From assembly GCF_001194135.2 (NCBI RefSeq), contig NC_068985.1, forward strand, positions 60,648,337 to 60,712,336: a stretch of DNA of 64,000 bases, read 5' to 3'. The notes beneath the pieces are model-generated. The model was not told the DNA's origin and made no database searches. It saw nothing but the letters and a program-made list of their open reading frames with translations. A program made the position numbers and the translations under genes. Position 1 is the first letter of the stretch, and each line of letters starts with the position of its first letter. Below, piece by piece: positions 42,101-63,047 of the stretch. The DNA is from Octopus bimaculoides (Eukaryota).

Positions 42101-45100
42101 ATTCATATCAGGTATTCCACCAGCTCTAACCATCTCATCACTGTTTTATTAAAGATTGTTGATGTTAGAAATCATTATCATTATCATTATTATTATTATT
42201 ATTATTATTATTATTATGTAGACACAAGGTCAACAGTTTTAGGGGGCAGATGCTAGTTAATATCATCAACCCCAGAACATGACTAGTACTTTGTTTTATA
42301 GACTCAAAATGTAAAGAGCTGGAGCAAATATTGCAAGACTTGCTGTCCAATATCTAATGTTTCTATCTATTCTCTGCTCTATAAAATAATAATAGTTTCA
42401 AATTTTGGCACAAGGCCAGCAACTTTAGGGGAAAGAGCATAGTCAATTACATCAACCCTAATAATTAACTTGGAATCTTCGTGGTTTTCATCACTGCATG
42501 TCGAAATCTTTAAAAAAATTATTTAATGTATCATATAGATGTGATTTTTGATGCTGAATCCGAATTTATTCACTTATTCCAGAAAAAATTCTGCGAAAAT
42601 GTTGCAGGTGTTCAAAGTTTGATCATTTACAGCCAATCAGAAAACAGCACATTCGCTGCCTCTTCCATCATCTGTCACATTAGCGAGGAAGTGGGAGGAG
42701 GTGCACCAGCATGTCAAAACATTAAACTAGCTACAGTAAACAGTGAAAAGTATAAAAAGATTTGCGAACATATTAAATATCTAAAAGCTTCTAGCAAACC
42801 AACAGGAGTTGCTAGAAATAACAGTCAAAACATTAAAATATACACAAGCAAAGTTAACAGTGAAAAACATTAAAAGATTCATGAGCAAATTAAATATTTA
42901 AAAGCTACGAGTAAACCAACAGGAGTTGCTAGAAATGACAGTCAAAATCTGGTGGTTACATACCTTGTGTGCATGTACAGCATCTCTGGTTACTATGGAA
43001 ACAGAGCTCTTCGCCACGGTGATGTGTAAAATATTTGCTTCTGATTGGCTAAAATACCCAAATTTTGCAAATTTTAAAGGCTAATAACTTTTTAATTATA
43101 AGTTTATAGGGAAAATGAATTTCATTTTCATAATTAGTATGCAAACCTTAATCCATAAACCAAATTTGAAAACAACAGGAACAAAATTGTAGACTGACAA
43201 AAACCACAAAGATCCTTCATTTTATTGACCCTGAAAGAATGACCTCAGCAAGATTTGAACTCAGAATGTAAATGCCAGCGAGCATTTTGTCCAGTAATGA
43301 TTCTACAAGCTCATTACTTTAATAATAATCCTTTCCACTATAGGTACAAGGCTGAAATTTTGTGGGGAGGGACTAGCTGATGGGTAGAGGGTAACACTGA
43401 CTTTGACAGCATTTGAACTGAAAGAAATGCTGCTTAACATTTTGTCTGGTGTGTTAATGATTCTGCCAGCTTGCTGCCCTGATAATAATAATAATAATTT
43501 CACATTTTGACGCAAGGCCAGAAATTTTGGGATAGATGGTAAGTTGATTACATCAAACCCAGTGTTCAACTGGTACTTGTTTTATGAACCCTGAAAGGAT
43601 GAAAGTCGACCTTGGCAGAATTTGAATTCAGAACATAAAGATGGGTGAGATGCCGCTAGCTCACCACCTAAATAATAATAATAGAAATAGTCTATGTTAT
43701 CCTAACCCTTCCTTGTAATTAAATCTTATCATTTCAGGGTGAATATTCTGACAACAGACATGGATGGGAAATACCTCGACGTTTCATAAAATTGCATGAA
43801 CTCATTGGTAAAGGTGTCTACACTGAAGTATGGAGAGGTAAAATGCAGAAAAATCCTGCCAGAGAAGATATGGTTAGGGTTGCCATTAAACGACTTATGG
43901 GTATGTATGTTTTTTCAAATCTAATAGTTATTGTTTTTGTTGTTATTTTTTTAGTTCTTGATCAGTCCTGGTCCAGCTGGCAGAGTAACTCAAATATTCC
44001 ATATAAGGAATATGAGGTAAACAATTCCATAACAAAAATAATATATAATTACATCTTATCTACCTAAGAAACAGCATATTGTCTACAACATTACTCTAAC
44101 TTCATGTTTTTCTCCATGTATACCTCTGTAACTCCTATCAGGTAATGATACATATGTAATGGGGAATAAATGATAGCAAATTTTTTTTAGTCTTCTATTT
44201 TAATAGATAATTGTTCTGCAAAAAGATTTTCCAGTATTTTCAACTCTCATTTAAAATATACTTTGGAGTACCAGAATATGCAGATGTACTTCTTGAAGAT
44301 ACAGCTTGCATTATAATCCTATCCACATACTGTGTGTGTGTGTGTGTGTGTGTGTAATTATTGTTGACTCCATCCACTTTTCCATGTTCTATGGTTTATG
44401 ACCATTCTCTTGTAAGACAATGTCTTACTGTTTTGTTATAATTCTTTGTCATCTCTTTGGAGAGATTCAGCATTATTTCCAACATCATCTTTTGACTTTG
44501 TAGACATTCCAGCAATACATTTACCATTCCACAGACACAGAAATACTATCAATATATATTTAAACCAATTAAGCTTAATTCTGAAATTTACACAAAATTA
44601 TCATAATAGTTTTTGATGTTGAACAAGAAAAAATTGAACTTAAATAACATGAAATACAAATTAAGATTATTCAACTTAGATAGATGTATATCAAAGTTGA
44701 TCATATCATTATTATCACTTGCCCCTTATGTTGGCTGAACAAGCCGGTTCACTTACACTTCTGCTTTCTGTAGTGGGGTCACATTCCGCTGGTAAGGTAC
44801 TCCATCTGCTGTCAACAGCCGCTGAATGGGAGCCTGGACATTCTGTGGTTGCTGATGCAGAGACATGCACTCAGGTTGTGGCATCTCCAGTGTTTCCTTG
44901 ACTGTGAGTGGGTGTGGTCACCATTTGTGAGACTCGCTCTTCTACAGCTCATCTCTTTGACTGAGCTACAATCCTGGATTAGGCATAGACAGAGGTGGGG
45001 CACTTGGCACCTCAAGTGCTGTCAAGTGCTCACAGCACTCCGCCAGGTGGGCAATGTGGTTGGTGGTAGTTCTACTCTGGCATTCTGTAGAGGGTTAGCA

Positions 45101-63047: not shown

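Follow-up and report, generated by a model that had tools for sequence, protein, structure and literature searches.

Does an octopus gene with an intact reading frame and a tyrosine-kinase fold encode a receptor that can no longer carry out phosphotransfer, and what kind of receptor would it be? The question is raised by a stretch of 64,000 nucleotides from Octopus bimaculoides (contig NC_068985.1, positions 60,648,337 to 60,712,336; here called the window, with positions counted from its first letter). An earlier note, made from the letters alone, had read in it five spliced kinase exons of an immunoglobulin (Ig) receptor that had lost both catalytic aspartates, and had proposed a conserved, catalytically dead and possibly lineage-specific receptor. 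The comparisons described here indicate that the gene is probably a member of a conserved, kinase-dead, mollusc-specific family of Ig receptors. This is apparently an undescribed receptor pseudokinase family within a known functional class. The gene itself is known in RefSeq under a wrong name, and the new part is the interpretation.

A six-frame motif scan placed the kinase motifs quoted in the earlier note on the plus strand: GKGVYT and VAIK at about 43.8 kb, SYRL/LTSAS and GFG at about 60.0-60.1 kb, and PVRWM and DVWAFG at about 62.9-63.0 kb. These motifs are real and well above chance. All five exons that carry them (exons A to E, Table 1) are flanked by AG on the acceptor side and GT on the donor side, and the junctions between them have phases 1, 1, 0 and 0. 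The joined exons are free of stops, as the note had stated, and gave an open frame of 235 amino acids. The 235-aa peptide matched the Pfam family PK_Tyr_Ser-Thr (E=1.2e-48) and aligned with the FGFR1 kinase colinearly and over the full length (E=1.9e-40).

The FGFR1 alignment showed the degenerate residues where the note had put them. In the catalytic loop, HRDLAARN is replaced by SYRLTSAS, with Asp changed to Arg and Asn to Ser. The Mg-binding DFG is replaced by GFG, and the Gly-loop GxGxxG by GKGVYT, resulting in the loss of the third Gly. The residues described as kept are all present, namely the Lys of VAIK, the Glu of helix alphaC, LPVRWMxPES and DVWAFG. The alphaC Glu lies 17 residues past the beta3 Lys, with the same spacing as in FGFR1. 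A kinase-like HRD or DFG on some other exon would have overturned this picture, and none of the six frames of the window contained one. Judged from these residues, phosphotransfer with Arg at the catalytic base and Gly at the Mg-binding Asp is very unlikely.

The product was identified by scanning 1.84 billion representative proteins exhaustively with HMMER. The window exons are 99% identical to a 726-aa protein of Octopus bimaculoides, XP_052824023.1, which bears the automatic name "vascular endothelial growth factor receptor 2". The encoded protein is a type-I membrane receptor: the signal peptide is followed by three Ig domains and a stalk, then by a single transmembrane helix, and after this come an acidic juxtamembrane segment, a tyrosine-kinase fold and a short tail. 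Pfam detected three Ig-type domains and then the kinase in XP_052824023.1 and in seven orthologues (7e-70 for the whole kinase domain). In the AlphaFold2 model, the ectodomain of about 370 aa formed three confident beta-sandwich domains (predicted local distance difference test, pLDDT, about 85-94), and the transmembrane helix was also present. The window corresponds to the 3' two-thirds of the gene; it does not include Ig1, Ig2, the final two kinase exons or the tail.

Within the ectodomain, Ig2 (residues ~161-242 of XP_052824023.1) has four invariant cysteines, C161, C178, C229 and C242. Their positions suggest an extra disulfide that would staple the start and the end of Ig2 together, beyond the canonical Ig disulfide.

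Orthologues were collected from about 22 mollusc species by the representative HMMER scan and a profile search, and 23 sequences were aligned. Among cephalopods they were found in Octopus, Argonauta and, as a 79%-identical transcript, in a more distant cephalopod; among gastropods, in Batillaria, Patella (a patellogastropod), Littorina and Biomphalaria. The bivalve orthologues are from Mizuhopecten, Pecten, Ylistrum, Argopecten, Saccostrea, Mytilus, Pinctada, Potamilus, Sinanodonta, Mactra, Mercenaria, Tegillarca and Solemya (a protobranch). Whether the SYRL/GFG-type substitutions are shared had been left by the note as something to check, and they recur across these species. The HRDL position reads [S/Y/C/F]-[Y/F]-R-L throughout the alignment, with Q replacing R in Saccostrea. 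The DFG position reads GFG in all aligned orthologues except Saccostrea, which has GFM. The third Gly of the Gly-loop is lost in all of them and the first also in bivalves.

Conservation in the alignment extends well beyond the lost residues. The Lys of VAIK and the middle glycine of the Gly-loop are kept in all aligned orthologues, and the alphaC Glu in all but Argonauta, which has Asp. The Asn position of the catalytic loop is variable (S/R/K/N). The transmembrane helix is nearly invariant, SPYA[IV]GA..[S/T/C]A.LA[VI][IL]LI[IV][VI]F, with a G-x3-[S/T/C]-x3-A motif. Other near-invariant elements are the acidic juxtamembrane motif, the juxtamembrane Tyr preceding WEIPR, and R-N-x-Y-E in the activation loop. 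The tail of the family carries H-[IL]-x-[LFMI]-[DE]-K-[LI]-P, with Asn for His in Saccostrea.

The combination of YRL and GFG was seen in no protein outside the mollusc group among the best 150 HMMER matches of the 1.84 billion representatives; a few unrelated proteins among these matches were degenerate in other ways. In the profile search, E values jumped from ~1e-145 for the last family member to 5e-77 for an insect FGFR. Neither this search nor the representative HMMER scan yielded a member from outside the molluscs. As far as such similarity searches can tell, the family is restricted to Mollusca within the searched databases, which agrees with the suggestion of a lineage-specific receptor. 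Because the family spans cephalopods, gastropods and protobranch bivalves, the decay of the kinase predates the divergence of these classes. In the established mollusc phylogeny, this divergence is Cambrian, more than ~500 million years ago.

Could the gene be a decaying pseudogene, or the substitutions errors of assembly or sequencing? The fragmented scaffold, with ten N runs in the window and an inverted piece that bears an exon (see below), lends itself to such an explanation. Against it stand the open frames, the canonical splice sites, and the presence of the same substitutions in independent assemblies from ~22 species and in transcript-like contigs. The rate of protein change also argues against it. 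In 777 coding nt (part of the juxtamembrane exon and exons A-E), which were compared with Argonauta exons of identical boundaries, 151 nucleotides differed, and 15 of the 259 amino acids. The nonsynonymous rate (dN) was ~0.03 and the synonymous rate (dS) was >1 and saturated, hence the ratio omega is approximate: 0.029 by LWL85 and 0.017 by maximum likelihood. The gene is under strong purifying selection. With dN/dS at ~0.02-0.03, and not at the value of about 1 that the note had named as the mark of a pseudogene, we regard the probability of decay or error as negligible.

Two contigs of 3.0 and 3.8 kb from the public runs SRR6517992 and SRR6474597, which were assumed to be RNA-seq, contain uninterrupted open reading frames (ORFs) of 729 and 771 aa. 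Both carry the degenerate catalytic loop and GFG, with the transmembrane, juxtamembrane and kinase parts in this order. Because the genomic genes have many introns, the contigs are taken to be spliced transcripts. They speak for expression of the degenerate motifs within the family. Conservation was highest in the transmembrane helix, the juxtamembrane segment and the kinase fold, and lower in the ectodomain. The stronger selection on these three parts therefore points to conserved intracellular and intramembrane interactions. Together with the three Ig domains and the spread over ~22 species, the low dN/dS bears out the conserved Ig receptor that had been proposed.

Two features of the scaffold bear on the gene model. 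The 14-kb intron between exons A and B contains an assembly gap (Table 1). The junction of the two exons reads VAIKRLM/V/EATDKEKK, and no residue is missing in comparison with four independent sequences, namely FGFR1, the O. sinensis protein, a cephalopod transcript contig and the genomic locus of Argonauta hians. In Argonauta hians, the same exons A and B are separated by a gap-free intron of 1.8 kb. A missing exon hidden in the gap was ruled out by this continuity in all four comparators, and the gap is therefore irrelevant to the reading frame.

The second feature is a 1.1-kb piece (27444-28546) that is flanked by N runs and carries the juxtamembrane exon on the minus strand. The O. sinensis orthologue contains the identical 37-residue peptide, positioned after its transmembrane part and before its kinase. 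The RefSeq model XP_052824023.1 (726 aa) omits this exon, and the O. sinensis protein XP_029636875.1, from a gene that spans 296 kb, has 763 aa, a difference of exactly 37 residues. From the identical peptide and the exact difference in length, we concluded that the piece is inverted in the scaffold, which explains why XP_052824023.1 lacks the 37 residues.

Table 1. Exons of the receptor gene and other features located in the window
Feature	Position	Strand	Remarks
Ig3 exon (I-set/Ig_3)	2893..3183	+	Residues ~252-349 of XP_052824023.1 (Pfam Ig_3/I-set match at residues 270-336); tblastn 97% identity; acceptor tag, donor gtaata
Extracellular stalk exon	13756..13824	+	23 residues; tblastn 100% identity; cag/gtaagt splice sites, phase 1/1
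Transmembrane exon	24935..25023	+	G-x3-S-x3-A small-residue motif, nearly invariant in molluscs
Juxtamembrane exon	28145..28255	-	37 residues; perfect AG/GT pair, phase 0/0
Kinase exon A	43738..43900	+	Juxtamembrane Tyr (GEYSD), WEIPRR, Gly-loop GKGVYT, VAIK with Lys
Assembly gap	55439..56256		818 N; within the 14-kb intron A-B; noncoding
Kinase exon B	57970..58080	+	111 nt; alphaC helix with Glu retained; strands beta4-beta5
Kinase exon C	58950..59155	+	Hinge, alphaD, short FGFR-length kinase insert, alphaE
Kinase exon D	60029..60142	+	Degenerate catalytic loop, GFG, activation loop with RNLYE tyrosine
Kinase exon E	62936..63047	+	112 nt; P+1 loop and following helix
Intronic transposon remnant	651..1178	+	
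Intronic transposon remnant	38145..38567	+	
Intronic transposon remnant	45114..45701	+	
Intronic transposon remnant	47605..52311	-	
Intronic trinucleotide microsatellite	41086..41328		
Intronic trinucleotide microsatellite	53639..54141		

The introns also contain material unrelated to the receptor. The transposon remnants include an ORF for an endonuclease of the long interspersed nuclear element (LINE) type (Pfam Exo_endo_phos_2, 1.4e-07), a weak mariner/DDE_3-like ORF and a weak zf-RVT ORF. Several long ORFs on the minus strand of the introns had no Pfam match. The trinucleotide microsatellites are very long and give rise to spurious poly-Ile/Leu/Tyr and poly-Met/Ser ORFs.

A few irregularities were seen in the gene models and loci of other molluscs. 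In Batillaria attramentaria (JACVVK020000257.1, locus 15717-15933), one exon changes frame ahead of the alphaE region of the kinase, owing to a 1-nt indel or an assembly error. The model BaRGS_00026983 (410 aa) of this species has neither the alphaE region nor the Ig domains, and KAG5702591.1 (664 aa) has both. Introns of the Argonauta hians orthologue (BAAFZT010000005.1) hold a partial extra copy of the end of exon C (TQILRGMGHLLRFK..., locus 8937-9047, plus strand) and a partial extra copy of the last coding exon (IPDYQRTGFYDQLDSDL, locus 5773-5838, minus strand); these copies are either local duplications or assembly artefacts. Mercenaria mercenaria has two family members on the same 82.9-Mb contig. 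One of them is truncated (534 aa) and named VEGFR1-like; the pair may reflect a tandem duplication or one gene divided between two models.

From which receptors did the family arise? When the 296-aa octopus kinase domain was used as a BLASTP query, the highest scores among the kinases compared were those of Cad96Ca-like receptors of a crayfish (218 bits, 38% identity) and a barnacle (216 bits, 37%). These were followed by human FGFR1 (198 bits, 36%), insect RET (195 bits, 36%) and insect FGFR (184 bits, 36%). Human PTK7 scored 140 bits with 31% identity, and a PVR/VEGFR-like receptor 129 and 52 bits, split around its kinase insert. The nearest active kinases by alignment distance were likewise Cad96Ca-type receptors of ecdysozoans. 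The nearest solved structures were FGFR1 (E=3.5e-56), FGFR4 and FGFR2, and the similarity to FGFRs was repeated in the top 50 Foldseek matches. On these similarities, the family belongs to the FGFR/RET/Cad96Ca branch of receptor tyrosine kinases, and to neither PTK7 nor VEGFR. The ectodomain matched Ig-type cell adhesion molecules (contactin at 6e-18, DSCAM, Robo, NCAM and neurofascin) and Otk (1e-11) better than the ligand-binding domains of FGFR2 (5e-7). Taken by itself, this ectodomain similarity gives no family assignment.

The name VEGFR2 is an automatic mislabel. VEGFR2 and PDGFR share with the mollusc family an Ig ectodomain and a related kinase fold, and on its 3' side the 112-nt exon E ends after HFG, presumably as in KIT/PDGFR-type genes. 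However, receptors of the VEGFR/PDGFR class have five to seven Ig domains (seven in VEGFR2) and a long kinase insert, whereas the mollusc receptors have three Ig domains and an insert of FGFR length. The Ig count and the lack of a long insert ruled the name out. Automatic names in the databases are inconsistent in general, and orthologues appear as VEGFR2, VEGFR1-like, FGFR4-like, EGL-15, Cad96Ca and CD331.

An orthologue of PTK7 (CCK4, Off-track) would also have an Ig ectodomain and a dead kinase; DVWAFG is common to both, and the ectodomain of Otk is among the Ig matches listed above. Human PTK7, whose sequence was verified as identical to PDB 6VG3, differs in several respects. PTK7 has seven Ig domains, not three, and its score with the octopus kinase is well below the 198-218 bits of FGFR1 and Cad96Ca. 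Its nearest solved relatives are MuSK and TrkA, whereas those of the octopus kinase are FGFRs. In a review (PMC13259870), PTK7 has HKD and ALG, compared to SYR and GFG in the octopus. PTK7 thus retains the Asp of the HRD loop, as the note had asserted, and the octopus decay is indeed deeper. On the number of Ig domains and the kinase scores, orthology with PTK7 is extremely improbable.

The likeness to FGFRs (FGFR1-4, Heartless/Breathless and EGL-15) is more substantial. In both, three Ig domains are followed by a transmembrane helix and by a kinase whose insert is short. Of the kinase exon boundaries, the first four, among them those of the 111-nt exon B, presumably match human FGFR genes. 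One explanation would be a kinase-dead FGFR paralogue that binds FGFs and, functionally resembling FGFRL1 or a kinase-dead FGFR, acts as a decoy or forms dominant-negative heterodimers with the canonical mollusc FGFR. The shared layout, the short insert, the best solved-structure matches and the FGFR-like names of several orthologues favour it. However, the acid box of FGFRs is absent, as the linker between Ig1 and Ig2 reads LEKPHC and has no acidic run. Similarity to the D2-D3 domains is weak, and the ectodomain is nearer to the adhesion molecules than to FGFR2. The kinase scores are slightly higher with Cad96Ca-type receptors (216-218 bits) than with FGFRs (184-198 bits). The dead motifs set the family apart from FGFRs, and its activation loop carries a lone Tyr before a Glu, which is the Cad96Ca pattern and not the YY pair of FGFRs. 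We therefore consider such a paralogue unlikely.

Cad96Ca/Stitcher is a Ret-like receptor tyrosine kinase of arthropods and tardigrades. Besides having the highest pairwise similarity among the active kinases tested, it resembles the mollusc family in a Phe past the DFG position (DFGFA in Cad96Ca, GFGFP in molluscs), in the single activation-loop Tyr followed by Glu, and in a GYR[LM] motif. Its tail D-Y-[IL]-E-L-D-R-F-P can be aligned without gaps with the mollusc tail motif; both lie equally far from the alphaI Arg-Pro, and the Cad96Ca Tyr is replaced by His in the mollusc family. The kinase and tail signature of Cad96Ca is thus present in molluscs in a degenerate form (GFGF, RNxYE, H[IL]x[LF][DE]K[LI]P). 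In contrast, Cad96Ca has a cadherin-type ectodomain and an active kinase with intact HRD and DFG, while the mollusc receptors have three Ig domains, Y-R-L and GFG; Pfam found Ig families alone in eight mollusc orthologues, and no cadherin repeats. The transmembrane and juxtamembrane motifs of Cad96Ca are unrelated to those of the mollusc family.

The conserved residues of the former active site allow another explanation, in which the protein retains enzymatic activity through a non-canonical mechanism, either metal-independent transfer or catalysis by residues that have migrated. In its support, the VAIK Lys, the alphaC Glu and the middle glycine are retained as described, and the substituted Tyr-Arg pair is conserved. 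Such conservation implies continued selection on the former active site. However, the position of the base is occupied by a positively charged Arg, the DFG Asp is Gly, the Asn position varies, and no conserved compensating acidic residue lies nearby. The change in the tail also argues against an enzyme. The tyrosine of EYLDL/DYLDL motifs, which is autophosphorylated as a docking site in FGFR, RET and Cad96Ca, has become His. The equivalent tyrosines are the PLC-gamma docking sites of FGFR1 (Y766) and RET (Y1015), and the replacement fits a receptor without autophosphorylation. A non-canonical enzyme is thus very improbable.

For the conserved kinase-dead receptor, the following course can be proposed. 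The receptor lost the HRD Asp, the DFG Asp and the third Gly of the Gly-loop before cephalopods, gastropods and bivalves split, and has since been kept under strong purifying selection; it would signal non-catalytically, as a co-receptor or scaffold comparable to HER3 or PTK7. The Ig ectodomain may bind a ligand or partner, and the invariant small-xxx-small transmembrane helix may mediate homo-association or hetero-association with an active kinase. The Lys-Glu pair, together with the Y-R, G-F-G-F and R-N-x-Y-E residues, could lock the pseudokinase into a defined conformation, whose surface would work allosterically or as a docking site. The juxtamembrane and activation-loop tyrosines might be phosphorylated in trans by an active partner kinase, and would then act as docking or sorting sites. 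The acidic juxtamembrane motif is a candidate docking signal or acidic-dileucine-like sorting signal that approximates, but does not fully match, the [DE]xxxL[LI] consensus. For this specific scaffold or co-receptor mechanism, as read from conserved residues, we see about an even chance.

A further explanation assigns the active site a new task. The family might be an ancient spiralian offshoot of Cad96Ca/RET/FGFR whose basic, rebuilt active site reads phosphorylated or acidic motifs within a receptor. The features of such a pocket would be the invariant Arg in place of the base, the loss of both acidic metal ligands, the Lys-Glu pair, R-N-x-Y-E and the acidic juxtamembrane motif. The pocket would bind the receptor's own acidic juxtamembrane segment or phosphorylated activation loop, as an intramolecular switch, or else a phosphorylated or acidic partner. 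We regard this as a rather improbable, speculative explanation.

Several points count against the view of a conserved, kinase-dead receptor of defined origin. Weak or atypical activity persists in some proteins that are called pseudokinases, and with the Lys-Glu pair retained, the octopus receptor may still bind nucleotides. The N-lobe of the kinase was modelled poorly by AlphaFold2 (pLDDT <50, from an alignment of 12 sequences), so that the ATP pocket is not interpretable in the model. In a neighbor-joining tree, the family formed a long branch that was drawn to divergent multi-kinase proteins, and its placement there is unreliable. Finally, the bit scores of Cad96Ca (216-218), FGFR1 (198) and RET (195) are close and do not separate the parent family.

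Receptor pseudokinases, among them HER3, PTK7, ROR and RYK, are signalling nodes of importance that are still poorly understood. To our knowledge, all the well-studied ones come from vertebrate-centred families. The mollusc family would add an independent origin of a pseudokinase in the FGFR/RET/Cad96Ca branch, predating the divergence of cephalopods, gastropods and bivalves. Its clean, conserved signature, including Arg at the catalytic base, offers a natural experiment on how a kinase fold is used after catalysis has been lost, of relevance to specialists of kinases and pseudokinases. For developmental biologists working on molluscs, the labels VEGFR2, FGFR, EGL-15 and Cad96Ca can mislead studies of fibroblast growth factor (FGF) and vascular endothelial growth factor (VEGF) signalling as well as inhibitor experiments (for example, with SU5402). 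No description of the family was found by full-text literature searches and in the spiralian FGFR papers that were read.

How does the family compare with known receptor pseudokinases? It has the properties of this class, being a single-pass receptor that lacks the HRD Asp and the DFG Asp and is conserved under selection. Eight human receptor tyrosine pseudokinases are listed in the review cited above (PMC13259870). STYK1/NOK, which has GLG in Table 2 of the review, was ruled out as a counterpart: its ectodomain is ~22 residues long and the Asp of HxD is kept, whereas the octopus receptor has ~370 aa with three Ig domains and has lost this Asp. The loss of both aspartates has a precedent in the same table (PMC13259870) in EphA10 (HRG/GFG) and EphB6 (HRS/RLG). 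PTK7, ROR1/2, RYK, HER3, EphA10, EphB6 and STYK1 share with the mollusc family a single-pass receptor architecture and a conserved, degraded kinase fold. None of them is an orthologue of the mollusc family, and the FGFR/RET/Cad96Ca branch is not known to hold a human pseudokinase. Compared to EphA10 and EphB6, the mollusc receptors retain the VAIK Lys and the alphaC Glu. They are distinguished from the human pseudokinases by an invariant Arg at the position of the catalytic base and by their restriction to Mollusca.

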